From Klebsormidium nitens (lineage: Eukaryota; Plantae; Klebsormidiophyceae), in NCBI GenBank assembly GCA_000708835.1, contig DF237663.1:1-41175 (forward strand): a DNA stretch of 41,175 nucleotides. Reading direction: 5' to 3'. Of this stretch, positions 1,810 to 41,175 are shown in pieces. The translations under genes and the position numbers were made by a program. A model generated the notes under the pieces. That model searched no databases. It was given only the letters and a program-made list of their open reading frames with translations, and was not told the origin of the DNA. Position 1 is the stretch's first letter, and every line of letters starts with the position of its first letter.

Positions 1810-2560
1810 GCATGCGTTTACTTTTAGGATGATCTGTGGACGCATGCAGTGCGGGCCTGCGTGCTGTAGAGAGTATAACGCCCATGCGAGTTTGTTGTTA
1901 CGTTATTTAGATGCGTAATTTGCGCGGGCAATGTCCGGGCGGCTGTTGCCACAAATATTTCGTACGCGTCCGATTCGATCTGATCGGTAAGTACACATGG
2001 TAAGATTGCAAGTATGATAAGATCAATCGTCGACTTGTGCATGATGCAATATAGTGTGGATCGATTAAACGCGTCGGGAGCTGCACCGGCAGTATATCTT
2101 GTTCACTGCCGGACGCAGTATTCCGCGGGCACTGATTGCCCATGTAATTATATATGTTGACTAACGCACGAATGCCAATGATGCATGAGCTGCAATTATG
2201 ATGACAATCGTGCACTAGCGCGGCGCGCAAATCCATTAGAACATATATATCAAGATGTACCGCGGCCAGCAACTATAGCTCAAGTTCTGGATAATTAGTG
2301 CAAGCTTGCAGTGAGCCCATGCCAGGCGGCCACAGTTCAATTCAACGGATGTACCAAAATGTACATAATTCGTGAGCTGTAGGTCGAAATATATGCAACC
2401 ATCAGATCACTTACAAATTGCTTGAAAAGTATCATTACTGACTCGTTCAGATCGCGGCCTAAATTGGCTCAGTCAGTACTGAGCCTAGCGCATGCCGGCC
2501 GGATTGAAACAGCACATACCATGTGCAGGCAGCTGAAAAGTGCGGTATACGTTTGACCAC
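1810..2560. other. Palindrome-rich intergenic island A (3' of ARI)
   Basis: Hand count of about 58 4-mer palindromes in 1921-2280 (about 16% of positions; 6.25% expected). Examples: TGCAAGCTTGCA 2299-2310, GGCTCAGT-cagt-ACTGAGCC 2466-2485, CCGGCAGT...ACTGCCGG 2086-2112. Boundaries approximate. Confidence 0.7.
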
Positions 2561-2847
2561 GCACTGCGTTTTGGATTGAGCACTTAAAGAGATATGTTTT
2601 GAATGCCACAGAAGCACACAGGTCGAACTTGAAAGGACTGGAATGAAAGTCGAGTCACTGTCTGCAGAACAGGCACATGAAACTTTAGACGATATTCAAC
2701 TGTACACGGTGACAGAGATGGTGACAACCAAGCTGTCCAAGCATGAAATCCTAAGCCCAGACATCTCTACATGGAAGCGGGCAGGTGTGCGCTCGTTCCA
2801 CCCTCGTCCTACCTCGACTAGGCTGACCCTGCCTACCCCTTACAACA

Positions 2848-5800
2848 TCAAGCCGGACGCGGCGACGCACACATTTGGCAGGCGATTGAAGCATTGGGGT
2901 TTGCGTACGTGCAGCGTTCGCAGGGCCAGTACGCAACTTCGTCTAGCATGTTAGACTTGGGCCTGCTGCTGCCTCCCTTTCCCTTCCCCCCCTTGCTCTT
3001 ACTTCGCGAGCTTTTCGACGTCCCGGCCTCGGCTGCTGCCTTGCCGTCCACGCTCTTCAGCCCCGTCTCCAGGTCCCGGACCAGGGAGTCGAAGTAGCCA
3101 CGAGTCACCCTGCAAGGGAGCGGGCAGGTCAGACGGGCCATCAGCAAAAACTCCGGGACTGGGTAACTGGCACCACCCTTCTGTTGCACAGTTACCCCCT
3201 CACAGCAAGCAAGCAGGCCTTCCGAGGAGGCCGCAAAAGGAGCTTACTTCAATCCAAACAGCATGCCCGCCTTGACCAGACGAACTCCTTCCATACGCCA
3301 TAGCAGGAGAAAAACGAAGACGGCAGGTTGTCAAGACGAGAACGCTTACGTCGTGAGTCCCGCGAGCTTCGTCTTGAACTCTGTGAAGGTCATGTCCGTG
3401 GGCGCGGCTGGGTCGTCATTCAGGAACTGGTTCAGGTCTTTCTCTGCACACTGGTGCAGCCGCTCTAGGTTCGCTTCCGCGTCCCCTGCACCACCAAATA
3501 CGGCGAAACGTGAGACCAACATCAACGTAGTGCAAAGAGGTCTCGACTTGCATCAAGGACACAACACATGACCAACAGTGGCTCGCAGATATCCGCAGCC
3601 TGGAAAACTTTCGATGCATAGCCCGTGAACCTGAAGCGCAGACTTGGCCAGCTGTGCCAAATAAGTTCGACTTAAGATTCATATGAGGCCGGTCAAGAAA
3701 CGAATCGATCACGACAAGGGGTGGATAGTACGACCTTACCTTGCGAGTATTCGAAGAAGTTTTTCTTAGCAATGTCCTCGTCTGGCAGGTAGTAGCCATA
3801 CGCGTACGTCCACTTGAGCACCCTCCGGCATTCAACAATCTGCGCATCGACGGGGAAACAGCATCAGCAGGTGCCAACGCAAATAGAGCACGACACATCC
3901 AGCAAACAATTGCTCCACAGATGCGGAACAAGCAAAAGAGGTGCGGTGTTCAGAGCCGCAGCCGAAGCACCTTGTGCGTGTCAAAAGCACAAGTTTGACC
4001 GGTGTCCAGGGCCTATCTCAAACTGCAACACTCACCTGCTGCAGTGCTTCGGTGATGAACTTGAGCTGGCTCACGGGCTGGCTCTGCCTCTCGCTCAGAA
4101 TCTCAATCTTGTCCCCGATGTTGCGCAAATCCTCCAGCGCTTTCTGGCGAGACTGCACAAGCAGAATAATCGGGAGGTGAGGCTACGAACGTGAGTGTGA
4201 GACAAACGCGAGCAGGTTTTCCTGAGACTGCGACCACTGACACGGAAGACGCAAGCAGCTCAACCAAACGTGCTCTGGACAACCACCATTCCTAAGACCG
4301 ACATATGCTGGCCATGAAAGACGAGGCTCACCGACTCGTTGGTCGCCCAACGCTCGTAGTAGTGGGTGTACTTCTCCAGAGAGTTCTTGGCCATCTCACG
4401 CCGACGCTCTGCCTCGTCGTACTGCACAGAGATGACACTACGGTCAGGTCGGCCGAGCAAAGATATGGACCGACAGGAGTATGCGAGCAGTCTCACACAA
4501 AGAGATATACTTTCTCCCCTGTGTAGAGTCCTTTCCGACGACTAACCCGGAAAAAGACCTGCAAGCGCAACACCAACGTCGATGCTTACCACTCCCTCCG
4601 TCTTGGCAGCCTCGTATCTGTTGCAGGCGTAGAAGCCACCAGTGCGCTCTCCGTGCTCAGTCCAGGGACCTAGGCAGAGCCTGCCAAAAGCAGAGCAGTG
4701 TCAGAGCACCACAAGAACACGGAGAGACCTGACGGCCAGTCTAGATCGTCAAGTGAATCACAAGAAGGAGTGCACAGGCTGTCTGCAAACTCTGCCTATT
4801 GACAAGCCGCCAGAATACACGCCCTTCCGACTGCTTCTGAAACGTACATCCGAAAAGCATTTCAGAGCTTGGAACTACATATGGTACGAAGAGGGCGTTG
4901 CAGGGTTGCCAGCGGTATGGCCGCGGTTGGGGCCTCACCAGCAGAACTCGAACTTGCACGGGGGTGTGCAACTCATGTGCATGCAGCCCTGGTTCTTCTC
5001 AATGGGCCGCTTGCACTTGGGGCACGGCTTGGAGTTGGCCAGAATCCTGCAGCGCCCAAACAAAACGCTCAGACAACCGGTAAGCGTCAACAAGATACAC
5101 AACGAAAAGAACCAACCTACCCGTAGGGGGCTGACAACGATCTTGCATTAGAGATCAAGACAGTGTAACGCAGGTGCTCATATCCGGTCCATCTACCTCT
5201 GACAAAATTCGAGTTCAACAGATACCACCAACCATTGCTCCAATTGCTTGACCCAGACCCCGCCAGGATGCACCCCGAGGAGAAAAGGGTCCCAGAGCAT
5301 GTGAATATAGAAACGGCACACCTACCAGTTCATGTTCTCCGATTCGGCACTGTTCTTCAGAATCCACTTGTTGACAGTGGCGCAGTCCACTGGCCTATGA
5401 GCCTCTTCCACGCACTGCACAGGAAGGAAAGGAAACAGAATAAGAATTTGAATGATAGGCTCAATCTAGACAGTACATATGCCACCATTTCCAAGATCTA
5501 ATCGCTGAAAGGTTGAGTCACTCCTCCGCACCTTCAGTATGTTGCGGCACGATCGAGAGGGGAGCACTTGCAGAGACTGGCATGAGCAGAAATATGGTAG
5601 GTTCCTCACCTCCCAGCAGAAGTTGTGCCCGCAGCGGCATAGCACGTCCATTGACGATGAGCCCGTGAGATCCTCCACGGAGTACACGCACCCAGGGGCA
5701 GGGCACCACTTGGCCTGCATCAGCGATCATATCTGATAAGCAGACTGTCTCATGGCCAGGATACGGAGGTGACAGGGCTGTGAAACCACAGGGAATGACA

Positions 5801-7725
5801 AATCTTTGAAAACGAGTGCAATTGTTGACTATGCGGTACCACATCCCCGCTGGTGCAAGTGCAAGTGCGCCCAGGCGGGGACACTCACCATGCGGTTGTC
5901 TTCCACGTAGCTGCGCCTGGCATACTTGAGGAACTTTTTGCGGTCCTCCTCATCCACCAGCTGCAGCACCATCTCATCCCCCAACACAGCATTGCAGTCT
6001 GGCTGAGCGCAGCGCAGTGTCAGGCAACCAGGCCCTTCCCCCACCTCAGAATGGACATACCCTGCAAAAAACAGCGGTGCTGGAAGACTCAAGAAGCTGT
6101 GACGAAAAAGAAATGATCTTCTGATCTGAGCATCAAATCCATATCTACCAGTCAAATGGGTAGAATCTCTACAATAAACCAAGCATCCTTTGTGTACATC
6201 GAAAGCCTTCAGTCCACCAGAAACCTCCATCAAAGCCGCCAATAATGGTACGTATCTGTAGCACAGATCAAGATATCCAAGGGCAGGCACTCACCCTTCC
6301 AGCAGTCCTTGCAATACAGATGACCGCAACGAGGTGCAATCATCTCGTCCCTGCTGAAGTCGTCGAAGCAGATGCCACAACTGACCTGCAACAGCAGGAT
6401 TGTAAGACGTGCTGAGGACCGTGTCCACAGCAAGAATCTGAGGCACCGCAAACCCTAGTCAACACCAGGACTTCATGAAATGAGCTTGACAGACCAGGTG
6501 GACACCACGTCATTTGAGCGAGGGAGATTTGAAAGGAACACATCAGGTACTCCTCTGAACGTCCGCAACAAGTGCGAAAAGCATGCGCTCGAGAATCAGA
6601 GGCGCTTTACCTTCCTCCTGCCTCTCCCAGTTTCTAAACCAGCTGGATGCACAAGTCCAACAAGATCCCGCACCCGCTCCTCGTCCCCAAACCATTCATC
6701 GTTGACACGGCTCACACTCCTGTGTAGATAAGTTCTCGTAAGCAACACACCGACTCACTGCGACCAACAGGCATAGCAGACCAACAGGCAAAGCAGCAGA
6801 ATCTGCTCAAGGCCCAAGACATCAAAGCGCAGACAGCAGCAAATGGATGCAAATGGCACTAGGCCCTCACCGCTTGGCCTCAAAAACATTCGAAGAATCA
6901 CAAATTCAATACTGCGAAAGACCAACCTTGATATGCAACAGATGCCTTCTGAAAGTAGAAATTATTAGGAGTCCCAGAGCCCGACCACTTGATTGCCTGT
7001 CTTTTAACTGCAGCACTTTGGTTCGTGCTGTCTTGAAGGTCCACATGCTTTCAGGTTCCAATTCAACAGCTGTAGTGTAACATCGAATGGTTCAAATGAT
7101 TAACGCCTACCATTTGAAGTGGCGCAGCAAAATTGTTGCCTCTTCCTCCGTGACAGAGAGCACAGAAGCAACACTCTTCACTGCCTCTGCCTGCCGCGCC
7201 TCGATGTCTTCGTCAGATAGGATCGCATAGTGAGCCTGTATAAGACGCGCGGAGTTTTGAGGAAAGGCAACACGCGGTGACGGCAAATCAGGGGAAATCA
7301 AAGCTTGAATGACAAGAGGACAAAGCCCAGGGACAGGGCAGCTATGCAGAGCACTCTCTACAACTTTTTGGAAAGAGGAGCAACAACAGGCAAGGGTTTC
7401 ATGTAGGTCTATGCAGCCACCTGACAAATGATCACCGTCTCTGATTTGCTTGATTCAACAACTCAGACCCCTAACCCACACAAAGCAGATACATACAACT
7501 TTCACGAACATTTCCTTCGCAGAAGACTTGAGAAACACCCAAAGACAGGCTTCTGCTAACATAACCTACCGTTGGTAGCCTGGAGCTTGGCTCATCGTCA
7601 TCTTCGCCCATGTCCTCATAGCCGTAGTCATCATCACTTGCTTCTTGTGAAAAATCTTCTTGGTCATAATCACCGTAATCATCATCCGAATCTTGCATGT
7701 AGTCCTGCTCGTCGTCAGAGTCCAT
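2848..7725 (-). CDS. ARI: ARIADNE-family RBR (RING1-IBR-RING2) E3 ubiquitin ligase with C-terminal RanBP2-type zinc finger, about 583 aa, ARI7/ARI8-like
   Basis: Exons 7725-7570, 7235-7111, 6719-6611, 6385-6295, 6061-5889, 5714-5610, 5414-5326, 5046-4939, 4680-4590, 4421-4332, 4152-4036, 3839-3740, 3485-3350, 3109-2848; all GT-AG and in phase. Motifs: acidic N-terminus [13 protein letters not shown]1 [43 protein letters not shown]2 [21 protein letters not shown], Ariadne domain [43 protein letters not shown]. Confidence 0.97.
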
Positions 7726-8623: not shown

Positions 8624-9571
8624 ATGGAGGAGGCATCTAGTCGGCAGGCTCGACTGCGGGCATTGCGAGAGAAGGCGGCTGGAAGTCAGGGGCCGGCAAG
8701 CGGTGCCCAGGGACCTCCGACGGGGCACCTCCCCCAGCCATTGCTTGCGGACCCTTTTCCACCAGCTCCACCCCGCCCCACACTTCCAAGTGGGCCTTTC
8801 AACTTCTACAGCAACCCGCTGTCCGCATATAGTACTTTCCAACCAGCTCCTTTGCCTGCCTCAGGGAATGTGCTCCCTCCTTCCAACCTCAGCCCTGCTC
8901 CGCTCGCTCCAGGGACCTCTTGGAGAGCGCCTTCGCAGGGCCCTTTCTCCGGTAGCCAGGGTCTGCTGCCAGGGCCGCCTCCAGGACTGCCCCCTGGGTG
9001 GCCGCAAAGTCAATCGCCCCATCAAGGTGGAGGCGGCAGACCTCAGTTCAATAACCAAGGAGGCTGGGGGACCAGCGGTGGTCGGCCAGAGTTTGTGAGA
9101 GGGGCCTTTCCGGGCAGAGGGTCGCCGGCTGCGCTTGGCAGAGGAAGAGGCGGGGTAGGGCTACATCATCCAGGCGGGCAGCCTCGATGGGAGGGTGGTA
9201 ATGCAGGGGGCCAGGACCTGTCGCGGGGAGCGAAGGCGCCGCGCTTTGACGGCGGAGGGAGGGGAGGCGGGGGAAGGGGAAGTGGGGGGAGGGGAGGTGG
9301 GGGAAGAAGGGGTCGTGAGGAAGAGCAGAGTGCGCGAACAAACCCAGAACTGTTCTTTCACAAGTCCATGCTGGAGGATCCATGGGCGGAACTAGAAAGG
9401 GCGCATGCACGCAGGCCAGCTGGTCATTCCGGGGTCGATGAGAGCTGGCTACCACCATCTTTGCAGCACGCTAACAAAGGATCCGCTGCTCCGGAAGTGA
9501 AGGTAGCTCTGGGTTCGAGCTTGGCGGACGCACTTGCGGGTGCGCTGGATGCGGCTCACAACTTGACTTGA
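8624..9571 (+). CDS. SIC: SICKLE / MPLKIP(TTDN1)-like proline- and RGG-rich protein, 315 aa, intronless
   Basis: Single ORF. Blocks match my recollection of Arabidopsis SICKLE: N-terminal MEEASSRQARLRALREKAA, FNFYSNPLSAYSTF, Pro-rich middle, RGG tract, FFHKSMLEDPW (MPLKIP motif), WLPPSL, SLADALAGALD. Length is similar to SIC. Confidence 0.85.
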   Translation: MEEASSRQARLRALREKAAGSQGPASGAQGPPTGHLPQPLLADPFPPAPPRPTLPSGPFNFYSNPLSAYSTFQPAPLPASGNVLPPSNLSPAPLAPGTSWRAPSQGPFSGSQGLLPGPPPGLPPGWPQSQSPHQGGGGRPQFNNQGGWGTSGGRPEFVRGAFPGRGSPAALGRGRGGVGLHHPGGQPRWEGGNAGGQDLSRGAKAPRFDGGGRGGGGRGSGGRGGGGRRGREEEQSARTNPELFFHKSMLEDPWAELERAHARRPAGHSGVDESWLPPSLQHANKGSAAPEVKVALGSSLADALAGALDAAHNLT

Positions 9572-10619
9572 ACTGTCCAAGGTGACAGCTCATCAAAGAG
9601 GGACGAGCGGCCCGTCGTATACACTGATTGCGGGCGACACTTCTTGACGACCATCGAGCAAGCTGTCCAGGCCTTGAGATTGGGAACAGATGTTTTGGTG
9701 AGGCGATGGCTTGTGCGTTCTTTGGCAAGTCGTGTCTTTGACTCCCTTTTGTTTCAAAAGGCTCAAGAGTTTCCGTTCAACGGTCGTGTTTGTTTGTCAA
9801 TCATTGCATAATTTGGAAATCGGTCAAGCACTTCGACCCTACACTTCAAGCATTCAGTGTCCTACACATCGTCGTCTTCGTGCAGTAGCACTGTAGAACC
9901 GGAATCGGCTTCAGATTGGTCAATTTACCTGCTGACATGGCGGCCATTCGATGCCTCTGGAGGGTTGTCACAGAATATACTTCGTCATAATCGGTGCCTG
10001 TCACACCTTTTATTGGAACATTTGGGAACGACCCTTTATGCATTGTTGCAACTCTGCTCGTCGAACTGCACAAGTCTGATGTATTTGGTTGGAAATTCAC
10101 CCGTCGGTGTGGTCCTTTAACAGCCGCTTCGAAGATCATGCCCCTTACATTAACCTTTTGTTCACCTGCCAGGTACTTGGCCCTGCTCTCTCAGGCACAT
10201 ACAATTTGTGGGAGGGCTTCTTGTAGGCCCTCCATAGCATTCGGGTTCCCAACTCGAAGTTCGTGTTTGTAGACTGTAATTGTCCATTGGACGTCCAAGC
10301 AGCTTGGGAAAGACGCAAATCTCTAGACATGACGATAGCTGCCCACCTTTTCTCAGCCTGCACGACTTGCCCGTCTGGTTCACTGCACTTGGATCTATCT
10401 TCACAATCAGGACAGGTTGCAAAGAAATCAGGGCTCGGGGAGCCTGGGTTGCTCGCATTGAATGGGCACCCTGCTGAGTACGGTGACGGTTTGAGCGCGC
10501 CACTGGGCGCCTAAGGGTTCTGATTTCATGAAACTGGGTGGGTATTGTAAGCTGAGCATCTCCGAGCCTGGTCAAAGGTTGGGTATACTTTCTTTTGAAT
10601 GTTTGTATAGTAATGAAGA

Positions 10620-10900
10620 ACGTGCCTGTATATACTGTTTGCCTGGCACACCGTGCAACCGGGATGTCATTACCTTGTAATGACACGGTGCGCGTACAAT
10701 TTACATGTATGCCACTCATGAAATAATGGCGGCCCCGCAAGCGTACTGATATACGTATGTATACATAGTTCAAGCTCTAGGCACGTTGCATGGGGACCAC
10801 GTCTATATATGCGTATGCCGTAGATATATGCTCGAACAGCGCCGGTCCAATATCTGCTGCGTGGATCGATTGTGTCATGTTTTGCCTAGCTAGCTGAGAT
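10620..10900. other. Palindrome-rich intergenic island B (between the convergent SIC and importin 3' ends)
   Basis: About 36 4-mer palindromes in 10681-10896 (about 17%). Examples: TGTCATTAC-ctt-GTAATGACA 10665-10685, ATGTATACAT 10757-10766, TACATGTA 10702-10709, AGCTAGCT 10888-10895. Confidence 0.65.
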
Positions 10901-17400: not shown

Positions 17401-20400
17401 AATCGAAGCGGCACTGCTTTGGCCAGAATCGAAGCGGCTAAATCTGCTCCGCTGGTGACACTCCTGACTGCACGCATCAAGAGATCGACTGACGTCACCC
17501 CAGTTGCAGAGGCCGCGTTTCACCTGTTCCTGGAGAGCCAGAGCGGGGAAGATGGCCTGGCTTAGCAGCGCCTCGAAGTGGGGCGACAGCAGGCGCCAGC
17601 CCTGCACACGCCACGCGGGGGACAGCATGCGTCAGTGACGGCGGCTGTTCCTTCTCATGGCTGCACTGCAGTCTTGAACCAATAGACCCGAGGATGGAGC
17701 CTCCTACACCATAGTCATACTTGGTGGGACTTCCTAGTGCTTTTCCGATCAGGGTCTCAGCTCTGGCTGTCGTTCTCTCCGACCCAGCCCCATCGCCAGT
17801 GCCATGCTCGTTTGCAGCCTTCCCCCTTACCCCGGGGAAAAGGGCACTCACCGGGCCTGTCTCCAGGATGGCGGCCAGCAGGTCGAAGGCCAGCGACACG
17901 ATGCGCTCCTGGAGCGGGTGCAGGCCCTGCACGCGCCACCACCACGCACACTCGCTCAGACGGCACCAAAGGTGGGCCGCGCTGCTGCACCGTCCAAGGT
18001 AGGCAGCATGCTATGGCGACAAGAAGCGGACAACTTGACCAGGTGCCTGTGTTTCCTACATCGGGCTTCGATCCAGAGATGGTTGCCATACGTTCTGCCC
18101 ACCTCTCGTCCGTGGTACTCGAGATGAGGCTGGGTGACGCACCTGATGCGCCACTGCTGCCGTGACAATGCCCACCGCCGCCGTGACCATCTGCTGCAGG
18201 TACCTGCCACCGCAGGCGCCTGGCAGGGCTCAGCGCAGACACGGCCGCAAGGGCCAGAACCAGCAAGGGCAGCCAAGAGTGGCGCTCCTGGCTGGACCCA
18301 TGGTAGACCGAGGAGTCTCACAAAAATCCAGGAGTAGACGTTAACAGTGGTTTAAAGCTCTCCGCGTCAAATTTGCCACCGGAGCTCCGACTCGAAATGT
18401 ACAGTTTTCGATCTTGAATTCCGATTTCGATTCCTGATCTTCGATACTTGCACACCCCTAACATGTCGATTTTAGAGAGGATGATTAGCCGGGAGCTTCA
18501 TAAGAGTTCCCGGGTGGATTCAGAAGTCAAGTGACAGCTGCTTCATCTTCAGCAAGAATCACTGGCCGTTTACTAAACGTCAATCTCATCCCAGGGGGTA
18601 CCGCCGTCCAAGATGGGAATGGGAACTTCACATTCAAGATCGAGAACCGCAATGCGACCGTTGGGGCTCCGGTGGCAGGTTTGACGCAGATAGCTGTAAC
18701 ATGAGCCAACGGTGGTGCGTGGGTTGCTCACTTGTCGGTGTGTTTCCGGTGGCGGGCAACCATGGAGGCACAGATCTGGAGGGTGCGCTTGACGAGGCGG
18801 AAGCGTGTGATGTGCCCTTCCTGCGGGTCTTGCACCGCCAGCACGGGGAGGGTCGCCAGCGCCAGCACCCCGGCCAGCCACACCGGCAGCTGGGGGACCA
18901 AAGCGGCAGGCAAGTGGGAGCGCACCTGGGGCGACAAAAAGCAGTGAGAATAGGCTCCAAGTGTAGAGGCGGGACGTCAGATATTTGTGTGAAATCTTCT
19001 TGGACTGGTTTGAACTTGGTCAAAGCAACGGTGGGGCATTTCAAGCAGACGCCCAGGCGGAGGCCCTGTCATGAGGTCGAGGCAGTGGCTCGTCCTTCAC
19101 TCGGGGACAGCTAGGGGGCCACCTGCCGCAGAAAGCCTCTCACTGTGTGGTGGAACGCCTTGAGCAGCAGGTGCAGCAGCGCATCGTGCTCCGCAAGGCC
19201 TGCTTCATGGCTGGCAATCGCCTGCGAAGGGATTAGAAATGCCGGTCAGACCAACGCACAGTCTGCCTTGGACCAGCCTGGACTGGTGGGGCCAGATCAC
19301 GTCTGGCCCAGCTATGATCTGCCTTTCGGTCAACGCATGCCTGGATCTACAACGAGAGGCCATCGAACGGGCGCCCAAACTCCGCCTTCACATGAAAGCT
19401 GCAACAAGGAGCAAGGCGCACCTGTTGCGTGAGTGCCTGGTAGATGCTCTGCAGGGGCTCCAGCAGCTGCGCCGCAATGGCCTCCAGCTGCGGGGGGACG
19501 GGCTCAGCCACCTCCGTCGGCTTCTGGAAGTACTGCACGCATCACAATGCCAGGGGCAGGCGGCCCATCAGAGGACCCATCAGTGCAGCACCGAATCGCA
19601 CGGGGCAGCCTCTGTAAACGAAGACTACCTCCAGCCAGCATGCTTACAGGGGCACCCGTCAACGTGGGCCATCGAAAGTGCCAGCGGGGTACAGAACAAA
19701 GATATCAGCCTCATTTCTCAACACATCACCGCAGCCCTTCTCCGACACACTGGCGTGGTTGGCGGGCCTACTTGGAAGGGCTTGGTAATCGTGTGCACTG
19801 CCACGAGCGCGTTGTACGTCTTGATGGGTGACACGGCGCTGCCGGCCATCAGGTTGCTGTGCTGGATGGCGGCACGCAGGGCAGGGAGCAGCTCCGGCCA
19901 CTCGCCCGTGTCGCGAAAGTCGTGCATCACCAGTACGCGCAGCTACACACCCAAGCAGGCGGAACGGGTTTGGAATGGCATGCGTCCTGTTTGAAAGACC
20001 AGATACTCACTAGGAATGGACGGTGCCAGCTTGGGGTTGGTACACAGTGGAATGCGCAATGCTGCAACCTCCCCTGTGAACCCCTGGTGCCCACATGTTT
20101 GGGTTGCCTCACCGCCTCTGCCAGCTGCTTGAGCACTGCGCCGTCTGCTCGCATGACCACCTCCAGCAACTGGGCACGCACAGTGGCGCGCTCGCCCGCT
20201 GGGAGGCCCACGCCGCGGTCCTCGGTGAAGCGAGTGGTGCGCACATAATTCTTCAGGTAGGTCGCTGCAGGCAGCGAGTAGCCGGCCAGCGGGACCACCG
20301 CGCACAGCGCCAGCAGCTGGCTGGCAAAGCCTGGCAAGCAGGAGAGGGCGGGGCATGGTTAATGGCATCGTGCACAATGTCTGGAGGCAGCTGACATCCT

Positions 20401-21545: not shown

Positions 21546-21550
21546 TAAAA

Positions 21551-21959: not shown

Positions 21960-22253
21960 TAGTGACTCTGAAGTCAACCGTACTACAGTGGCCCCGCGCG
22001 TGCCCGGCCGCGACGTAGTGTTATACCGTAGGACCTAAACCCTCCGACAAACCCTACGGCGCAGTACGTGTCACCAGCCGCGCGGCCGGCCTGCGCGCGT
22101 CGAGCTCATAAGAAATCAGAGCTGCCCCAGCCCCGGGCTTTTATTCAGCCACCGTCTTTGGTCGTGTCGCACCTGTCGAAAGCCGTTCATTTTTCATCGA
22201 CGGTTGTGGCGCGTTTCACCACATTTGAGGCTGTCGTCAGCACTATTTGCTTA

Positions 22254-22431
22254 GTACGAATTATTAGTACCGGCGGTACTATTAAAAACAGTACCGCGGA
22301 GTCGCGACGACGGTAAATTTGATACCGGCCGGTACTATAGTCTGACAGTATTTGTCAGACTGTGTGTACGGCATTGAGTGCCGTACGCAATTTGGTACGG
22401 AAAATTTGGAATTCAACCGTCGCGCGACGGT
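22254..22431. other. GTAC-dense chain of short hairpins/palindromes
   Basis: TAGTACCG-g-CGGTACTA 22265-22281, TACCGGCCGGTA 22323-22334, AGTCTGACA-gtatt-TGTCAGACT 22339-22361, GTACGGCA-ttgag-TGCCGTAC 22366-22386, ACCGTCGCGCGACGGT 22416-22431. Eight GTAC in 145 bp. Confidence 0.8.
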
Positions 22432-22592
22432 ATCGACCCCGGTAAACTTAGCACTGGAAGTCTAGTGAGCCTACATTTCAGTACAGTGCAGCCTCAGTGC
22501 ACTACCCCAGTGTCAAATTTATTCCCGCGAACACCTCGGTACATGTCAAAAGTCAGCCTACGTCACGCGCGGCCTTCACCCAGACTGCGCAA

Positions 22593-23163
22593 CAGGGGTG
22601 CGGACAGGATTTTGCCTCGAGGCGCTTCTGCGCCCCGGGCCTTTGCCCTGGGGCGCAGGCAGCTTCCCTGGGGCGCACAAAGTAGTACCGGGCCCCAGAA
22701 GCGCCCGGTACACTTAGCTTTTGCTCTATTACGGCCCTAGGAGGCCCTGGGCCCTGGCCCACCTTATACTCCTAATTAGCAGCAACTACATGTGGGACTT
22801 ATCGGATCAATACGCTACTGATACTAGTCTGCTTATGGAAGCAGTAAATGCAGATACGAATTTGAATGTTTTCTTGAATGGCGTGGGGACAGGCAGGATG
22901 ATAATCCGGACGAGTTCTGTAGGGGTAGGCACTTATATAAGATTGTCAAATATTCAGGCAGCACTTATGGCATTGAAACTCGCTCAGATTCTAGACTCTG
23001 TTCAAGATTGAACCAGATTAAGCACCCAATATAGGTAGTCCATGTCCCTGCTTAGGCCCACATTTGCCCGGGGGCGCTTCTGCGCCCCGGCTCTTCGCCC
23101 GAGGGCGCAGGATATTTCCCGGGGGCGCTCTGCGCCCCATTCTGCGCCCCGCCCGCACCCCTG
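22593..23163. mobile_element. Non-autonomous hAT-type element (571 bp) with 8-bp TSD
   Basis: 11-bp perfect TIR CAGGGGTGCGG (22593-22603 / 23153-23163). Identical 8-bp flanks CTGCGCAA (22585-22592, 23164-23171). GGGGCGC/GCGCCCC subterminal motifs at both ends and an AT-rich core. Confidence 0.92.
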
Positions 23164-23269
23164 CTGCGCAAGCCAATCAGAAACAAGTATTCGCGAATGT
23201 CGCTTGGAGGCGGTGGCTGATTAAAAGCCGGTAGATATTCTGAACTTTGATTTCTTATGGCTATAGCTG

Positions 23270-23660
23270 TATGATTGCACATATGATCGGACATGCGGAT
23301 TATTGGGAATTTGGGCCCTGCATGAAACAATTGTCATGAATGATCGAACGCATATCATTGGATCGACGCGCGCATGCACGTACAATAATGGATCATCCGA
23401 CAGTTTACAATTATACTATGGCCATTATCAGTTTACTACGTACCGGTACCGTCAGGCAATTGCGAAATTCTTTCAAGAATTTCTGTCAGTGGTATCTATC
23501 TAGCTACTAGCTGCATCATTGAATCACGCGATCAGATCGACCGCTTCAATCCGTTCATGATCGCGATCCGGGCTGGCATGATGTAGTATGTGATTATATA
23601 TATAGCTCGTTAAGCTAGAACTCTTTGATAGCGCGAGCCGCAACTTCTGACAGAATTGGC
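23270..23660. other. Palindrome-rich intergenic island C (3' of BIG)
   Basis: Hand count of 61 4-mer palindromes in 23281-23640 (about 17%). Examples: GTACCGGTAC 23440-23449, GAAATTCTT-tc-AAGAATTTC 23464-23483, GATCGCGATC 23559-23568. Confidence 0.75.
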
Positions 23661-32243: not shown

Positions 32244-33711
32244 GCTGCCAGCGTGTAGAACAGCTCGCACAGATTGGAGGTCCCCCAATCCTCCCTGTTT
32301 CTGTGAAGAAACCTGATTGAGTCAATCCTCGGGTCCAAAATCGCAGGAATTCAAAGAACTACTGGATATGTGTGGTATTCAATCTGCGCAGCTGTAGGAT
32401 CAACCTTAGCACCGCTTTGCATTGACCCATCATAAGGATATTTCCTGCTGCAGTCCTGACACTTTTATCCTGGACGACCTTTGCCCCAACCTGACCACTG
32501 CGGTTCAAGCATTCTTTGCGGCTGCACTCTCCTCAGCCCCCCAAAGCCATGCTCATCATCACGATTCACGATGTAGCGCTTGCATTGGTATGAGCGTCAG
32601 AGCGAGCTGTGCATGACGGGCAGCCTGTGTACCTAGATCCGCCAACTAGAGCGGTGGTGACTCTGATTTCACTTGCAGACGAGATGTCGGAGTCCACTCC
32701 TTTCCGGTACGTACCGGTACCCGCTCAGTGGCAGACTCAGGTACGTGGGTACCTACTAGGTACGGTCGTACTACCTGCCGATACCGGTATAGCAAAGCTT
32801 GGTTGACCCGAGGGAAGTTCTCCCGCCCGATGATGGCGAGCGGCGCCGACTTGATCAAGTTTGACATCAACAGCCCCGGGCAGGCCGCTTGGCCTGGTGC
32901 GACCCAGGGGAACGCATTAATGCACTCGGTACCTACCGGGGCACGGCGGTACACCATAGTATGGTAGATACCGGTATTCGCGGTGCCCATTTCAACGTCT
33001 CATTGGGATTGTCAGATTTTTGAGCCAATGGCAAATCAAAGGATTTTGTGTGCAGTGTGAAATCTTGTGAAGCATGGATCCTTGACTGGGAGAGACCAAG
33101 GTCCAAGACTCGAACTCCGAGTCGAAGTATGGACGTGGCGAGTGACCCAGGTCCACAGGGCCTCGAACAGGTCGCCAATGTTCGTATCATTATGGTGGTT
33201 CTGTAGGAGGTGCTCAATACCCACTGCATGCGCTCTGGGCGTCCCATGTGAGCTCTAGGGATTACTGTCCTAAAGGTACCTAGGCCCTAGGGTTTCAGAT
33301 GTCAGGCGCATTGGCGGCTTGTCGAGAAATCAGTAAGAAATGGCCTCCAAGTTGCGGTGCTAGCGTGTTCCTGGTCATTCTGCTGCATCCCGTCCTCATC
33401 AGCCTGGCGAGAGGGATCTTAGCCTGCTAGAATTTGGTTCCAGATCTCAACGTTGTCTGAGGATTTAAAGCGCGGGATTTGAAGCATGGCCATAGATGCA
33501 CCATTCTGCTCCAGCCGGTTCAGATAGGGCTGCCAAAGCTGTTCAAGTGGGGTCTCTGCTAGAATGTTTGGGCTCACCTTTTAGCTTGTAGGACCTGAAC
33601 ACAAAGCGTCTTGCATACAGGTGCAGAAGACAATTGACCCTCATGATGGTAAAATAGACTGACAAGGCAGTATTTTGAGCTAGCTATCAAGAGTCGTCTG
33701 AACAGCCGGCC
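32244..33711. promoter_or_regulatory. Divergent promoter/5'UTR region shared by BIG and NACK-type kinesin
   Basis: 1.47 kb between outward-facing ATGs (32243 on -, 33712 on +). Contains a TAGGGTTT telo-box-like site at 33288-33295 and the GTAC cluster below. Confidence 0.6.
32704..32988. other. GTAC/CCGG palindrome cluster in the BIG-kinesin divergent region
   Basis: Seven GTAC within 32707-32771 and nine in total. Examples: CCGGTACGTACCGG 32704-32717, ATACCGGTAT at 32781 and 32968, ACTTGATCAAGT 32849-32860, CAGGCC-gctt-GGCCTG 32881-32896, GCATTAATGC 32914-32923. Confidence 0.8.
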
Positions 33712-36700
33712 ATGGCCCCTTTGGCGGGACCTGGTGGGGCAGGTGATTTTGCAGTGCCCGGACCGCCAGGTGCACTGGTTGTAGGAATGCGGAAAGCCAA
33801 TGACAACGAGGAGGCTATTCTGGTCACTGTGCGAGTGCGTCCGCTTAGTTCGCAAGAGCTTGCAGAGAGGGACGTGGCAGTGTGGCGTTGCACCGACGAA
33901 AAGACATTGACATTCATGGACCACGTTCCGGAGAGGTCACCTTACCCATCTGCTTACGCCTTTGGTGAGTTGACAGTGTAATAATGCCTGCAACAGACCG
34001 TCTTGTGCAGTAAAGGAGGATGTGGCATGTTTTGGTGAGAGTTTACCCGCTTACTTTAGAGTTCGAGGACTACTTGCAGCTCGCTGCTAGAGTACACATA
34101 GAAGAGCATGCGGAGACATGGCGGCAGAAACAGCATTGTCAGAGAGACCGATCAGAAACATGCTTTTGCATTGTAAGATTCTTTGTAAAGCTTCTTCCAA
34201 TTGCAGGACTATCTACTGCATAACAATTGGACGTACGGTATTGTACCCATGCTATCTGCAGAATTGTGAAAAGTCTCTCTACTTGCCTCGGTCTGAGACT
34301 GACGGAGCTTATTCAAGTGATAAACCACATTCCTAATAATTGCAAACCACAAGTTGGGGGAATTGCTCTTCTCGGAATCTGCTGTATTACTCTTGATTTG
34401 ACAGACTGACATCTTGCTTGAGTAACAAGCCAGATTGTGTGTTGCAGATCGCGTTTTTGGGCCTGTGGCTTCATCAGAACAGGTGTATGCAGAGGCAGCA
34501 CGCGACCTTGTGCAGTCATCCTTGAGCGGTTTGAATGGTCAGTCCCCTGTCTTTGCACATCCTTTGAGGTCTGGTGGTGGGTTGCATGTGATCCGTTGCT
34601 GGTGTCCTCGTGCTTTGGCCTCACTATATTTGTCACTATGGCATGATGCGGCGGAAGCTGGTGCTAGTATCTGTGAGTTGATTCTCTGCATAGCCTGTGG
34701 AATTTGATGAGCATGAATCAGTGGTTCACTTTCTACTGCAGCCACGGTTTTCGCATACGGTCAGACAAGCAGTGGAAAGACCCACACAATGCGGGCCGTG
34801 TCGCGGAGTGCCGTGCAAGATATTTTTGAGCACATACAACGGGTGAGATCATCAATGATGCTGCTTCTTTCGGCAGAGAAGGACACTCTTACAATGCAAC
34901 CTCTGTAATGTACACTGGCAGCCTTAGCTTGGGCTTAAAAGCAAGTCTTCAGTAAGATTGGTGGCCGCATCACATGGGACGGCATGCAGGCTCATGCAGA
35001 TGCAGCGCATGTGTCGCTACTCGCTTTAGGACATTGTGGACAGCTTAATGAGAGTGACGTACGCGCCCTTGGTTCTGCTGTTTCTGAGGAGGGAATGGAC
35101 CCCCAGGGATATAAGCGTAGCTGCTTCTATCAGCGTGTGCCCGTTCATGTATTTGATTGGTTTTGATTGGTGTGACTCCGTCTGTGCAGACCCCACAGCG
35201 GGAGTATCTGATCCGCGTGTCTGCTCTGGAGATTTACAACGAGGTGGTGCGTGACCTGCTGCGCCCTGACAGTGGCCCGCTGCGCTTGCTGGACGACCCT
35301 GAGCGCGGCACAGTTGTGGAACGCCTCGCCGAGGAGGTTGTTCGCTCAAGCGGCCACCTCTATCAGATTCTGGAAGACTGTGAAGGTCAGCCTGGCTTTG
35401 GGTGGAAGCAAGAAAATCTACGGGGTTCGAACGCCAACGTTAAGGAGGGCTTCTGGAGCGGACATGCGTGATTTAGTCAACTGTTTCGCAGTGACAACGT
35501 TTCGTGGAGTAGATTGATATCAGTCACCGATGATGTCGTTGTGAAGGTTCGCCGAAGTACACAGGAGACCAAACATATGAAATGGATGCTGAAAGGGTCT
35601 CTTTCTCAGCACCTACTTTTGTTCTCATCGAGTGGGGTGCCTGGTGGGTGCAGCGCAGCGGCAGGTGGGCGAGACGATGCTGAACGACAACAGCTCGCGG
35701 TCGCACCAGATCATTCGCCTGAGCGTGGAGAGCTGCCCCAGCATGGAGGAGGGCATGGTGGCAGGGGCGGGCGGCAGCCACGTCCTCATGAGCGTGCTCA
35801 ACTTTGTGGACCTGGCAGGCAGTGAGCGCGCCTCGCAGACGCTGGCAGAGGGGGCACGGCTCAAGGAGGGGGGCCACATCAACCGCTCCCTACTCACCTT
35901 GGGCACAGTCATCAGGAAACTAGGGTGAGGGGCAGACGGGACAGCACCATAGCACATGACACGGTGTTACAATTACCATTCTGTTGTGTGTCCTGCACTG
36001 GCAGACATTCGCCAGCCGCTTATCTCCCAACCTGGACCCACATGTTGCCTTTAGATCTGATGAGGAGGGAGATATTGCAAACTTGATGCTGACAGTACAA
36101 CTAGACATGTATTAAGAGCTCGTCCGGAAGGGTGTGATCTGCGAAGAAGGGAGGGGGAGTACAGAGGCAGTTGGCTGTGTCCCGGCTGGTCTGGTCCTGC
36201 GTTTTTCGCACCTTTTCAGCCTTCCCCACCCTCTGGGCTGCAGAGAGAGTAACAAGCTACGGCGCGGTCACATCCCATACCGGGACTCCAAGCTGACGCG
36301 GATTCTGCAGCACTCTCTGGGGGGCAACGCGCGCACGGCCATCATCTGCACCATGAGCCCCGCGCGCGCTCATGTGGAGCAGACTCGCAACACGCTCTCC
36401 TTTGCCACGCGGGCCAAGGAGGTCACCAACAGCGCGCATGTCAACCTGGTAAGCAGGCCTGCTGCCACTACCCCTTGACGCACTTGACAGTGTTTGCACA
36501 GCAGGCGGTTGTCTTCAGAAGTTACTCTTAACATCTCATGTTCCGCAGACGCTGGGAAGCTCAGGCTGGGCCGTTGTTGGGTTGGTCACCCCCCGCCCTG
36601 TGTTTTTCGGTGCAGGTCGTCAGCGACAAGGTGCTCATCAAACGGCTGCAGCGGGAGGTCGCCCGGTTGGAGGCAGAGCTGGCCGTGGCAGCCAACCCTC

Positions 36701-39700
36701 GGGAACTGCAGGCGCGCGACATCCGGATACAACAGGTCAGCGGGTGTATAGAGCTTGCGCTGCAGTAGAGGCTGTTTGGCCATGGACCAGCCTTGGAAGC
36801 TTTCTGCAGCTTACCTGACCTCTCCGCTTGTGGTTGCGCGCGGGTCCTTCGTGCAGCATATCCTCCGGGTTGCACGTGTGCGGGGCCTTTGAGCAGGCGC
36901 TGAGCGGCGCTGGTGGTGTGCAGATTGAGATGCAGCTGCACGAGCTGGTGCGGCAGCGGGATGCCGCGCAGGCACATGCACGCGAGCTGACCAAGGCCAT
37001 GATCAAGGGCGACAGGGGCGACGAGACCTCGCAAAAGGTAGGGACTTCTCCTCCGGAATTCTAGGGCCCTGAACAGGTTGCGATAACTTCGCCTCCAGTA
37101 TTGCCGGGCCACTGCCTGACGCACTTCAAGAAAGTCTAGTCCATGAGGAGCTTGCACCCCTTTCAACGTCCATTGTTCGCCCTTTCAGGCGACCAAGTCT
37201 TGGAGCCCGGATACTGTAAAGAAGCTGCTGCGCCGATCAGGGAAGAAGAAAAAGACTCGGCTTGGGGCACCCGACGACGTGAGCATCGAGAGCGCGCCCC
37301 TGTTCGGCACCAGCGCGAGCCGCTTCCTGGAGTACAAGGAGATGCGTGAGCGGCGGCGGGAGCGACAGCGCGAAAGGGAGAGGGTGAGGCCGGCAACTCG
37401 GGAGCCGCTCTTCAGCGGAATGACGGGCTGCCCCGGTCCTCTCTCGTGCACTGTATGCATGTGATGCGGGCCGTTCTGTGGAGTGCAGTCCTGTGCTGAG
37501 ATTGATTGTTGTCTGCCATGGGTTGTGGCGTGCAGGAGCGGGAGGCGGAGGCGGCCGTGCTGGACGGGGAGAAGCGCAAGCTGGAGACGATGCACGAGCG
37601 GCTGGGCCAGGGGGCGGACGTGGCAATGCAGGCGCTGCACAAGGAGATTGAGTGCCTACGGCTGGCGCAGGCCCAAGCCGTGGTGGGGGGCGCCAAGTCC
37701 GCCGACATCGCAGGTCAGCGCTGGGGCCGGCCTCTCAAGGGGGCTTCTGCTGGAATGAGTGCCCTTGATTGTTGCTAAAGCGCAGACGAAAATCCGAAGA
37801 CGGACCATGGGTTGCCCGGCCAGTCCTGCATTCCGGTCCCCGTCTGATTGCTCTGTGCGGCTACAAACGTGATGACCCAGTTATTTGGTAACCCGAAGTA
37901 GCCCGGGCCACAGCTGGCATGCTTGTGCTCATGCGGCGCCTCTTCTCCGTGGGCAGGCATGATCGACAAGCTGCAGGCGGAGCTGGAGGGGCTGCAGGCG
38001 GCGCAGGCGGCGAGCGTGCCAGAGGAGGACGCTGGCGCAGAGGCGGCCCCGGAGGGGGAGGCCCCCCCTGGGATGCGCAAGGCGGCAGTGAATGCCAGCA
38101 TGGAGCGGATGATCCAGCTGCTGCGGGATGAGCTGGCGCGCCTGCAGTCCGCCACCAAGGCGGACGAGAAGGCGGACCAGGAGATCAGTGCACTCGAGGA
38201 GAAGCTTGAGAGTACGTGCGCCCTGCCAACAATCACGTGTGTGAACTTGTTTCGAAGGACTTCTTTTGCCCGGCGTAATACTTTTCAATGCACAAGTGGT
38301 CATTGTTGGACGATAGTCGCCTGTGCTCGGTGGTTACCGCCCTGTTAGTCAACTGGAGCTCCGCCAGGCGGAAGGAACAGCTTCAGCATAGCCTGTGCTT
38401 TGGTGAAACCGAATTTCTCGTTGAGTACCCATAGTCATCTTTTGTCACGGCTTCTGCGGCCTCTGAACAGGAACGCCCTCCGGTGCTTGCTCACAGGCCG
38501 TGACGGAACCTTTGAGAGTCTTTGAAGCATCACCAAATCCTCCAAGAAGCCGACAACTTGGAAGTGGAACAACAGAGCATGCCGACTCGACCAGAATTTC
38601 CCCTGCTGGAACCTCTCTGATGTTTCTGCCCCACCACTCCCTTCAGGTGCCCAGCTCTCACTGGACAAGTTCTATGACAGCGCCACTCCGGGGGACGACC
38701 CGCTGCTCTCCAGCGGCCGCCGCGTATTGGCGCCCCGCTCCCCTGGCGGGGCCAATGCAGCAGGCCCGCCTGCCTCGCCGCGCCTGCACCGCCGCTCGCC
38801 GTCAGCAGGAGGAGCCCTCCCCGGGGGGCACCAGGAGAACGACGAGAACGCTCCGGGGGGGCAGGACAGCGGGCACTACAGCGCCCCAGAGGATGGCGAG
38901 AAGACGCCGCGACGAGGGGGCGCGTCGAGCGTGGATATCCGGCGCATGCAGAGCCTGTTCAAGACGGCGGCGGAGGAGAACGTGCGCAGCATCAAGAACT
39001 ACGTGACCGAGCTCAAGGAGCGGATCGCCAAGCTGCACTACCAGAAGCAGCTGCTCGTCTGCCAGGTGAGGGGCGCGCAGCAGGCACACACTCCCAAGGA
39101 CGGGCACCAAAGCGGGGCGCAAGGGGCATCCCCGAAGCGACGGGCCCGCATGAAGGGGGTTCAGCTTAGGGAAATTTTGTCGCTGAGTGTTAACTGGTGG
39201 CTGGGATGCAGGCACCCACAAGATGGTGCCTCGGCAGACTAGTCTCACCACCCTTGATGCCTCCAGTTTGCAGGTTTAGCCACTGGAACCCCTTACTCGA
39301 TTGAAAGGATGCAATGAGGGCTTCAGGGACTGCTGAGATTTAAAGCTCCCACTGATGGCCCTCTCCCAATGTTCCGCTGGCCAGAAGTGCTATACTCAGG
39401 GGTGCCACATTCGATCTCTCGACCTTGACAGGTGCACAAAGACGTTGCATCTTCGTGTGCGCATGGCAGGTGTTGGAACTGGAGGGCGCGGCGCGGCGCA
39501 GTGGCGAGGAGAGCGAGGGCCCCGCAGGCCTGCGGCCGGAGGTGTGGGTGGCGCGCTGCGAGGAGCAGACGGCGGCCATCGTGCAGCTGTGGGACATGTG
39601 CAACGTCAGCCTGTTCCACCGCACCCAGTTCTACCTTCTCTTCAGCAGCGCGGCCGCCGCGGACCACGTGTACCTGGAGGTGGAGCAGCGGCGTCTCGAG

Positions 39701-40225
39701 TGGCTGCGCGAGCAGTGCCTGCTCACCCTCGAGGACGGCCACGACGAGCCCCGCGCCATCCGCGGCTCCCTCAAGCGCCTGCGCCACGAGAGGTACGTGC
39801 ATATAGCAAAGAGGCCCACTGCGCAGGGTCAGAGGCCGGCTGTTACTGTTGCATTGAGTCGTGCATGTAGGTTCGTGTCTGGAGCCGCAGCTTAAACGTT
39901 GGGGCTTAGCTGACCTTTGGTGGTCTGGCGCAGGGACGTCTTGGCCCGACGAATGCGGGACCGGTTAAGCGACATGGAGCGCGGGCTCTTGTTTGAACAG
40001 TGGGGGGTGCCGTTGACCTCCAAAGCCCGGAAGCAGCAGCTGGCTGCGCTGGTGTGGAACAACCCCTTCGATGCCAAGCATGTCCGCGACAGTGCCGACC
40101 TGGTGGCGCGCCTCATGGACTTTGGAGACGCCTCCACGCTGGTGCCAAAGGAGATGTTTGGGCTCAAGTTTGCGCAGCCAGGTCGGAAGAGAAACTGGCT
40201 CATGCGCATTGCATCGACAGGTTGA
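33712..40225 (+). CDS. NACK1: Kinesin-7 family, NACK1/HINKEL-TETRASPORE type, about 1003 aa
   Basis: 14 in-phase GT-AG exons: 33712-33964, 34448-34537, 34742-34842, 35190-35385, 35654-35924, 36244-36448, 36616-36735, 36924-37037, 37189-37383, 37536-37713, 37957-38211, 38647-39065, 39470-39792, 39934-40225. Motor motifs: [70 protein letters not shown]-specific stalk [38 protein letters not shown] and C-terminal [19 protein letters not shown] (DUF3490-like). Confidence 0.95.
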
Positions 40226-40554
40226 CTACAATCTTCAGGAATGCTTGAATTGGAAATAATGCTTGCTAATAGAGCAATCAGTAGGGAGTTGCGACAGGAA
40301 TTCGATCACTAATATGTACATTAATATTGCTTTGACTTGCTTCTTTCAAGTCGTTGGCCAGCACGATCCTTTAAGCACATATGGCAAGTTTGGGGTTTTT
40401 GCAAATCTTCCAATATTGTCATGCTGTCGGGGCCCAACGGTGCACCTCAACGACCCTGCCGCGCTTCTCTTCATTCAGATGGTCACTTGCAATTTAATAA
40501 ACCCTGAGCCATATGCGTTGAGCCAGTGGGCAACGCTCCGGTGACATCCTGAGA

Positions 40555-41175
40555 TTAATGTACCGTACGGTTAGGAACTTGCCCGCGCGCGGGCCTGCGA
40601 TTTCGAAACCTGGGTGCCAGCATGTGGGTCACCGTCTTAAGTTCGGGTGGCTCAGTCGCTAATTAATTCGATCGACAATTGCACGTAGCACACTGAGTGG
40701 ATCTCCAATCTCCAATATTGGCGCGTAGTACTGGCATACAGCACATGATCGATGGCCGGAGAATTGACCCGCTACGTACATACGTATACATACGTTGATC
40801 AAATCATGGTCACTACGATGCACGAGATGATTTGCGTGATCGTGGACAGTGACTATGCTAGCGGCCGGCGCCGCCACTAACTAATTGAATTGCAGCGGCA
40901 GTTATATAGAGTACAGTCACTCAGTAGTTGAGTCAGTCAGGACGGTACAATCATTGAATACTAATTTGTCGATCGCAGAACATATATGTACTTAAGTTGC
41001 ATGCCATGATGGCGTGGTTTGCGACTGGTGCCTATATATACCGTACTGGCACGTGGCCGCGCGGTTTATACGTACATGCCCTATAATTGCCATATGCAAC
41101 TTACGATCGATGCACATGGTGTACTAGGGTATACGTAAAGACCGCCGCAGCCGGCCCACCCATGTGACGGTTGGA
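40555..41175. other. Palindrome-rich intergenic island D (3' of kinesin, runs off window)
   Basis: About 74 4-mer palindromes in 40681-41160 (about 15%). Examples: ACCGTACGGT 40562-40571, GCCCGCGCGCGGGC 40581-40594, CCAATATTGG 40712-40721, ACATATATGT 40980-40989. Confidence 0.75.

Follow-up and report, generated by a model that had tools for sequence, protein, structure and literature searches.

Islands of 4-bp palindromes beyond gene 3' ends in a window of the Klebsormidium nitens genome

Introduction

In budding yeast, short inverted repeats are enriched at poly(A) sites and have been tied to chromatin (Miura et al. 2018, PMC6420913). We have analysed a stretch of 41,175 nucleotides from the alga Klebsormidium nitens (contig DF237663.1, positions 1 to 41,175 of the forward strand; hereafter the window), in which discrete blocks of DNA crowded with 4-bp palindromes, here called islands, lie beyond the 3' ends of genes. 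The likeness to the yeast repeats is that dyad-symmetric sequence is enriched at gene ends. The yeast repeats, however, are cruciform-capable, rich in ApT/TpA or in A/T tracts, and placed at the poly(A) site, whereas the K. nitens islands are made of any 4-bp palindrome at ~47% GC, avoid A and purine tracts, show no raised hairpin potential and form a domain of 0.3–0.7 kb beyond DNA that resembles an untranslated region (UTR).

Two further classes of element invite comparison on the basis of position or composition. Bacterial REP elements and intrinsic terminators also place palindromes between convergent gene ends, but those elements function as stem-loops in RNA or single-stranded DNA; looped stems in the islands occur at chance level, and a search of Rfam found no known RNA family in the window. 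CpG islands share with the K. nitens blocks a jump in the observed/expected ratio of CpG (CpG o/e), here from 0.6–0.85 in transcribed DNA to 1.2–1.4, but the K. nitens blocks are found at 3' ends, not at promoters, and their GC content is below that of their surroundings.

The palindromes themselves recall P-nucleotides, which arise from hairpin-capped ends in V(D)J recombination. We know of no chemistry other than the opening of hairpin-capped ends that generates zero-gap palindromes of 2–4 bp irrespective of sequence. P-nucleotides and excision footprints resemble the islands in consisting of zero-gap 2–4 bp palindromes regardless of sequence; they are, however, scars at single junctions, whereas the islands carry one excess palindrome per ~17 bp over whole domains. 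Excision of MULE, hAT and Transib elements passes through hairpins on the flanking DNA (PMC5499845). In yeast, de novo duplications of 2–4 bp have been described, 4 bp being the commonest size among those that depend on TOP2 (Stantial et al. 2020, bioRxiv 10.1101/2020.05.03.075358); the islands share with them a 4-bp periodicity, but have no excess of non-palindromic 4-bp duplications. In the literature on palindrome enrichment at gene ends, or on palindromes as a tetranucleotide class, we found no description of the texture reported here.

Results

Palindromic tetranucleotides are concentrated in discrete islands

The window is intron-rich eukaryotic DNA of 57% GC, in which an initial annotation had described four palindrome-dense blocks. 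The blocks are real: within the limits given there, a palindromic 4-mer starts at 13.5%, 15.1%, 16.2% and 15.2% of positions, compared with 6.8% on average over the window and 5.4% in a control intron (6781–7080). Against 1000 dinucleotide-preserving shuffles, a control that the annotation had itself proposed, the excess persists, with z-scores of 5.0, 3.3, 5.5 and 6.4 for the blocks and 0.09 for the control intron. When the islands are pooled, the observed/expected ratio (O/E) of palindromic 4-mers is 1.69 (z 11.5) against trinucleotide-preserving shuffles and 1.61 (z 10.0) against a null that keeps the purine/pyrimidine (R/Y) pattern; in all, the excess survived four randomised controls.

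An annotation-free scan of 400-bp windows ranks the four blocks among its top windows, and a 100-bp profile resolves them into discrete islands with sharp edges; at 10900, for example, palindrome density falls from 0.18 to 0.05. Their limits in this profile, together with those of a fifth island piece that had been overlooked, are as follows.

Island I1, 1900..2500: 0.35 kb past the ARI/RBR stop codon at 2848; 88 palindromic 4-mers versus 54.3 expected, O/E 1.62, z 5.5; CpG o/e 1.27
Island I2, 10600..10900: between the MPLKIP-domain gene (plus strand) and the importin-like gene (minus strand); O/E 1.52, z 3.4
Island I3, 23260..23660: 0.32 kb past the BIG stop codon at 23979; O/E 1.74, z 5.2; CpG o/e 1.37
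Island I4, 40500..41175, continuing past the end of the window: 0.28 kb past the kinesin stop codon at 40225, just after an AATAAA at ~40495; O/E 1.67, z 5.7; 6-mer palindromes z 6.9
Island fragment, 21961..22106 (146 bp): density 0.175, O/E 1.78, z 3.7; CpG o/e 1.39; purine/pyrimidine tracts 0.056

The four islands are alike in density, in GC content (~47%) and in CpG o/e, and similar in length (0.3–0.7 kb). In total, ~2 kb of island sequence was sampled, all of it from this window, and 46% of island bases fall within a palindromic 4-mer.

Two stretches of kinesin exon (36001–37200 and 39201–40000) also exceed dinucleotide shuffles, with z-scores of 4.5 and 3.8, but at a density lower than that of the islands; a shuffle z-score alone therefore fails to single out islands. 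The words behind the exonic excess are GC-rich (TGCA, GCGC, CGCG, AGCT and GGCC), and it probably arises from codon usage.

An island follows each of the five gene 3' ends

Genes were mapped from exon-by-exon Pfam scans and reading frames, with exons searched singly rather than as a joined spliced model. The map comprises the following.

ARI/RBR E3-ligase gene, minus strand: stop codon at 2848; IBR domain in the exon 4938–5147
MPLKIP-domain open reading frame, plus strand: 8624–9571, stop codon at 9571; identified by Pfam scan
Importin-like gene, minus strand: ATG at ~20672 (start read from sequence), stop codon at 11474
BIG/Sec7-type ARF-GEF gene, minus strand: 32321 down to the stop codon at 23979; DCB, HUS and Mon2_C domains
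Kinesin gene, plus strand: ~33679 to the stop codon at 40225; kinesin motor domain and DUF3490

Behind each of the stop codons checked (2848, 9571, 11474, 23979 and 40225), and hence behind five of the five gene 3' ends in the window, there is an island at a distance of 0.28–1.03 kb. The initial annotation had placed the start of the blocks ~0.3–0.6 kb past the four stops that it named, and our measurements agree (0.28–0.57 kb); for the fifth stop the distance is 1.03 kb. When four islands were placed at random, they matched all the 3' ends in 4 of 100,000 trials. The 3'UTR-like DNA that runs from the stop codon to the island has no excess of palindromes (O/E 0.90–1.23), and neither have the introns (0.93–1.13) or the region 41–1800 (1.00); divergent promoter gaps show a slight excess (1.17–1.26).

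I2 occupies a convergent junction. I1 probably does so as well, since a flip in strand skew suggests that its left neighbour is transcribed on the plus strand. A 100-aa open frame on the plus strand at 295–594, with a transit-peptide-like start and a sub-threshold DUF5323 match only, together with the skew, suggests that a gene as yet unrecognised lies on the plus strand to the left of this island. I3, by contrast with a convergent arrangement, sits at a tandem junction, between the BIG 3' end and the importin promoter on the same strand, and it is thus the 3' end, not convergence in itself, that the islands track. They are spacers beyond transcription-unit ends, in which we infer that neither transcription nor gene-body CG methylation occurs. 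The view that the blocks form a class of boundary or termination element, put forward in the initial annotation, thus holds to the extent that a distinct class of DNA occurs at transcription-unit ends, behind all five 3' ends and beyond UTR-like DNA that lacks the excess; the readings attached to it, as dimer sites, methylation substrates or products of looped snap-back, are unsupported by the results below.

The symmetry has zero gap, is independent of the word and acts at the tetranucleotide level

Reverse-complement symmetry in the islands is enriched when the two arms abut (gap 0, O/E 1.63, z 10) or nearly so (gap 1, 1.34; gap 2, 1.43), and not significantly at gaps of 3 or more (1.03–1.2); mirror repeats in the islands are not enriched. 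The symmetry is nested, in that the outer bases pair with a frequency of 0.44 if the inner pair is complementary and 0.26 otherwise, and the extension of palindromes from 2 to 4 bp runs at 0.44 versus 0.27. Once 4-mer counts are held fixed, 6-mer palindromes have a z-score of 2.1, 8-mers 1.7, overlapping pairs 2.2 and imperfect dyads of 12–20 bp at most 1.5. The palindrome signal acts at the tetranucleotide level, with longer palindromes, period-4 repeats and imperfect dyads about as expected. The perfect palindromes of 8–14 bp that had first drawn attention are indeed present, but at about the level that the 4-mer bias alone predicts (z 1.7–2.2). Decayed long palindromes were rejected as the origin of the texture, because imperfect 12–20 bp dyads are at expectation with 4-mers fixed.

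The enrichment does not depend on the word. Fourteen of the 16 palindromic 4-mers exceed dinucleotide shuffles, RRYY-type words being the most enriched; relative to transcribed non-coding DNA, every one of the 16 is more frequent, by 1.25- to 9.45-fold. Palindromic 4-mers with two different bases and those with four are both raised (O/E 1.54 and 1.78), and 2 kb of island contains 42 of the 64 6-mer palindromes that could occur. Sites for one dimeric binder, or for a few, as had been proposed, would not produce so broad an increase, and a cluster of binding sites for a dimeric protein was rejected on this breadth (14–16 of 16 words raised) and on the lack of any longer motif shared between islands. 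We also rejected, by reasoning, a 'double jeopardy' form of selection in which palindromes show both polymerases one RNA word: it predicts that some words are absent, and all are raised. Nor is it the primary rule that all four bases differ, since non-palindromic words of this kind are raised 1.20-fold and palindromic ones 1.78-fold. R/Y alternation, or Z-DNA, was set aside as the primary feature because alternating runs are explained by dinucleotides and palindromy survives the R/Y-preserving null. Cryptic simplicity or slippage was rejected because no tandem period but 4 is enriched; 2-bp and 3-bp tandem duplications have O/E of 0.93 and 0.89.

Purine and pyrimidine tracts are depleted four-fold in the islands, where RRRR and YYYY words together make up a fraction of 0.037, compared with 0.148 in controls and 0.125 in random sequence. 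The pair CCTC/GAGG occurs 72 times in the controls and 0 times in the islands.

Looped structures are not enriched. Hairpins with arms of at least 5 nt number 12 versus 11.0 expected for loops of 3–8 nt, and 21 versus 22.5 for loops of 9–20 nt, so that the tight hairpins noted at the outset do not exceed expectation where the loop has 3 nt or more. Single-strand fold z-scores of the four islands (−0.46, −0.64, −1.76 and −3.16) are not consistently better than those of shuffles. With looped stems at chance and fold z-scores mixed, a hairpin or cruciform terminator, or a REP-like element, was rejected. The restriction of enriched arms to gaps of 0–2 likewise speaks against a looped snap-back or template switch, as had been suggested, and snap-back insertions by polymerase theta were rejected on the O/E at gaps of 3 or more.

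CpG content steps up at the island edges

CpG o/e is 1.17–1.37 in the islands, compared with 0.59–0.85 in UTR-like DNA and introns and 0.72–0.83 in the divergent promoter gaps; the islands are therefore CpG-island-like in having a ratio of ~1 or more in a depleted background. In transcribed non-coding DNA, TpA o/e is ~0.55 and 6-mer palindromes are slightly under expectation (58 versus 78). TpA, ApT and GpC rise together with CpG in the islands, and loss of methylation decay alone is therefore insufficient to explain them. A methylome of K. nitens has placed CG methylation on active gene bodies (PMC5890265). The step in CpG o/e fits this published pattern, and points to the island edges as the places where methylated transcription units end. 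Symmetric methylation substrates, another of the initial proposals, do not account for the islands: their CpG is not decayed, and AT and CG sites alone would leave GATC, GTAC, AGCT, CCGG and others unexplained.

Transposable elements lie beside and within one island

A BLAST comparison between islands at word size 7 returned only matches of 14–21 nt that are due to chance or to self-palindromes, in line with the initial impression that the blocks share a grammar and cannot be aligned. No inverted repeats were found bounding the islands. Within the window, a single repeat or transposon family was rejected on these two grounds. The I3 spacer carries 4–5 of the 5–6 recognisable terminal-inverted-repeat elements of the window, among them several that resemble transposable elements of the miniature inverted-repeat type (MITEs).

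Element E, 22107..23259 (1.15 kb): terminal inverted repeats of ~50 bp with a GCT flank on both sides; recognised from inverted-repeat pairs and an alignment of its two ends, the flanks being read from sequence
Nested repeat-bounded piece inside element E, 22586–23170
Three adjacent MITE-like elements, 20997–21256, 21255–21547 and 21550–21960: between the island and the importin promoter; terminal repeats of 28–31 nt, 84–100%

The insertion of element E split I3 and detached the fragment at 21961–22106; the element itself is not counted as island. The interior of the element at 22161–22585 is itself island-like (O/E 1.47, z 3.1, CpG o/e 1.43); the bodies of the MITE-like elements lack the palindrome texture (O/E 0.98, 0.39 and 1.26). 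Because the I3 spacer holds most such elements, one of which splits the island, these spacers evidently receive cut-and-paste elements. One of the MITE-like terminal repeat pairs at 20997–21960 is 100% identical, and the element that it bounds is probably young. A TA is common to the first two MITE-like elements where they meet (21255–21256), a hint of TA target sites like those of Tc1/mariner-Stowaway elements.

The word GTAC, frequently within CGGTAC or GGTACC, is clustered at 32690–32990 and at 22201–22500, where 300 bp hold 9 occurrences, compared with a mean of 0.98 over the window. One cluster lies in the divergent BIG/kinesin promoter gap and the other within element E, and they have a 14-nt word in common with I3. 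SBP-box factors bind a GTAC core, and the clusters may represent a regulatory cluster or a transposon-derived piece.

Discussion

The reading that we favour, tentatively and at somewhat less than even likelihood, is that the texture is a repair scar, left in untranscribed and probably unmethylated DNA by inverted copying over very short lengths. At DNA breaks, one or two bases would be copied inverted and with zero gap, either by the opening of hairpin-capped ends, with P-nucleotide-like additions such as might follow excision of the hAT, Mutator or Transib type, or by a micro template switch during fill-in. Repetition of such events would keep rewriting unconstrained, insertion-prone DNA until it reached an equilibrium rich in self-complementary 2-mers and 4-mers. 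We infer, then, that the texture is mutational, with hairpin opening or micro template switching as the chemistry and transposon excision or other breaks as the source. Because enrichment is independent of the word, the cause reads complementarity itself; what is left is either a process that does so over no more than 4 bp or selection acting on symmetry. An excess at gap 0, with little beyond 4-mers, fits the pattern of P-nucleotide-type addition, which has zero gap, any sequence and arms of 1–2 nt, rarely 3–4, and the scale of 4 bp or less matches such additions because longer dyads are near expectation once 4-mer content is fixed. The uniformity of the islands in density, GC and CpG o/e is as expected of an equilibrium. 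A simulation in which random inverted additions of 1–3 nt are combined with point mutation reproduces the dinucleotide level, the rates of extension from 2 to 4 and from 4 to 6 bp, the distance-3 correlation and some of the depletion of tracts.

Several observations weigh against this reading. The simulation requires at least 0.3 break events per point substitution, palindrome density in the islands being very high; it also yields too many same-base matches at distance 2 (1.14–1.2 versus 0.91 observed) and too small a depletion of purine/pyrimidine runs (0.06 versus 0.037). A static-preference model, which favours each palindromic 4-mer 2.2-fold, fits most of the statistics, including the excess of self-complementary dinucleotides. 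Both models miss the identities at distances 1, 2 and 4 and the tract depletion; because they fail in the same places they do not discriminate mutation from selection, and a second constraint exists beyond both. No mutation events were observed in this single sequence, and direct repeats resembling target-site duplications are weak (periods 5–9, 50 versus 36.8, z 2.5). Promoter gaps, which we assume to be untranscribed and, as published for K. nitens promoters (PMC5890265), outside gene-body methylation, although their CpG o/e here reaches only 0.72–0.83, show far less texture than the islands, a difference that a purely neutral process does not predict. Sharp edges and a constant position, moreover, fit a function equally well.

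Such a function might be that of a selected two-way spacer, in which strand-symmetric, tract-free DNA is useful at transcription-unit ends; possible roles are to halt polymerases that come from the two directions, or to insulate against them, by way of strongly positioned nucleosomes, for instance, or of a symmetric DNA-processing enzyme. Selection of this kind would account for the constant place of the islands behind all five 3' ends, with its low probability by chance, and for their sharp edges, like sizes and uniform composition, as well as for a signal that is much weaker in promoter gaps and absent from the young MITE bodies of the same spacer. The single parameter of the static model reproduces most statistics, and the avoidance of purine/pyrimidine runs, so far below the random level, looks like a separate constraint. 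However, no words or positions are common to the islands, single-strand structure is not beyond chance in two or three of the four, and it counts against the proposal that we know of no protein that prefers all palindromic 4-mers regardless of sequence; we regard a selected spacer as the main rival, although rather doubtful. A further possibility is dense regulatory DNA, made of palindromic transcription-factor cores (ACGT, GTAC, CATG, CANNTG, CAATNATTG) or of promoters for antisense or non-coding RNAs downstream of genes. Dimeric binding to palindromic cores is widespread among plant transcription factors, TATA is raised 9-fold and TCAGT-type words ~2-fold in the islands, and one real single-word cluster, that of GTAC, lies in a promoter gap. 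Yet the actual promoter gaps are far weaker in general palindrome excess, and essentially all palindromic words are enriched, not a few motifs, so that a regulatory origin seems quite improbable.

Transposons might have supplied the texture directly: the islands would then derive from palindrome-rich elements of many families, as aged copies or captured fragments, each of them occurring once in the window. The island-like interior of element E and the clustering of transposons in the I3 spacer would fit this, but the islands have no homology to one another or to the elements and no bounding terminal repeats, the MITE bodies lack the texture, and decay sufficient to erase homology would erase 4-bp palindromes too; we consider this origin improbable. 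Scars of TOP2 (topoisomerase II) would arise if positive supercoils in front of polymerases drew the enzyme to 3' spacers, where fill-in and joining of trapped cleavage complexes would leave 4-bp duplications and a dyad-symmetric site preference would amplify palindromes. The sole enriched tandem period is indeed 4 (50 versus 26.8, z 4.5), but the excess comes from palindrome-containing repeats (19 versus 4.5) and, less, from dinucleotide repeats (7 versus 2.6), while non-palindromic 4-bp duplications are not enriched (24 versus 20.0, z 0.9). Palindrome pairs at lag 4 have a ratio of 0.93, those at lag 2 are largely explained by 4-mer content, and the palindrome excess remains after period-4 repeats are collapsed (O/E 1.40, z 5.9). 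Fill-in is, in addition, unable to create palindromes from nothing, and we judge TOP2 scars very improbable. There is still less to recommend a by-product of chance or of composition, through low GC, R/Y alternation or microsatellites. Alternating purine–pyrimidine runs are fully explained by dinucleotide content and some exons exceed shuffles, but nulls that preserve dinucleotides, trinucleotides or the R/Y pattern leave the excess standing (z 5–11), RRYY-type words are the most enriched and general short tandem repeats are absent; for the four blocks this explanation was rejected by the shuffles, and we give it almost no credence.

A wider proposition, which is conceivable although we incline against it, is that this streptophyte alga marks essentially every transcription-unit end with a 'directionless' domain, strand-symmetric at 4 bp and free of tracts, which would be actively maintained by selection for two-way termination or insulation or by a dedicated palindrome-writing repair restricted to these spacers. 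In either case this would be a kind of genomic element, or of mutational process, for which we found no description. Were the texture mutational, the spacers would record a break-repair pathway that writes 2–4 bp palindromes at a very high rate in untranscribed, unconstrained DNA; hairpin-end or micro-template-switch repair could then be read off across the whole genome in a relative of land plants that branched early. Were it selected, it would amount to a sequence-level definition of transcription-unit ends, and of insulation between neighbours, in a compact, intron-rich genome; we know of no such code in plants or algae. The domain is detectable from its 4-mer palindromes, its lack of R/Y tracts and a CpG o/e above 1, and might be used to mark transcription-unit ends in this genome without any annotation.

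Other features of the window

Metagenome searches with a kinesin exon and with a MITE end returned no match. A MITE-like pair of 40-nt inverted repeats (83%) at 18352–18699, within an intron of the importin-like gene, explains a local bump of palindrome density in the scan. At the start of the window, positions 6–40 are an unbroken run of ~35 A, perhaps the tail of a retroposed element to the left.

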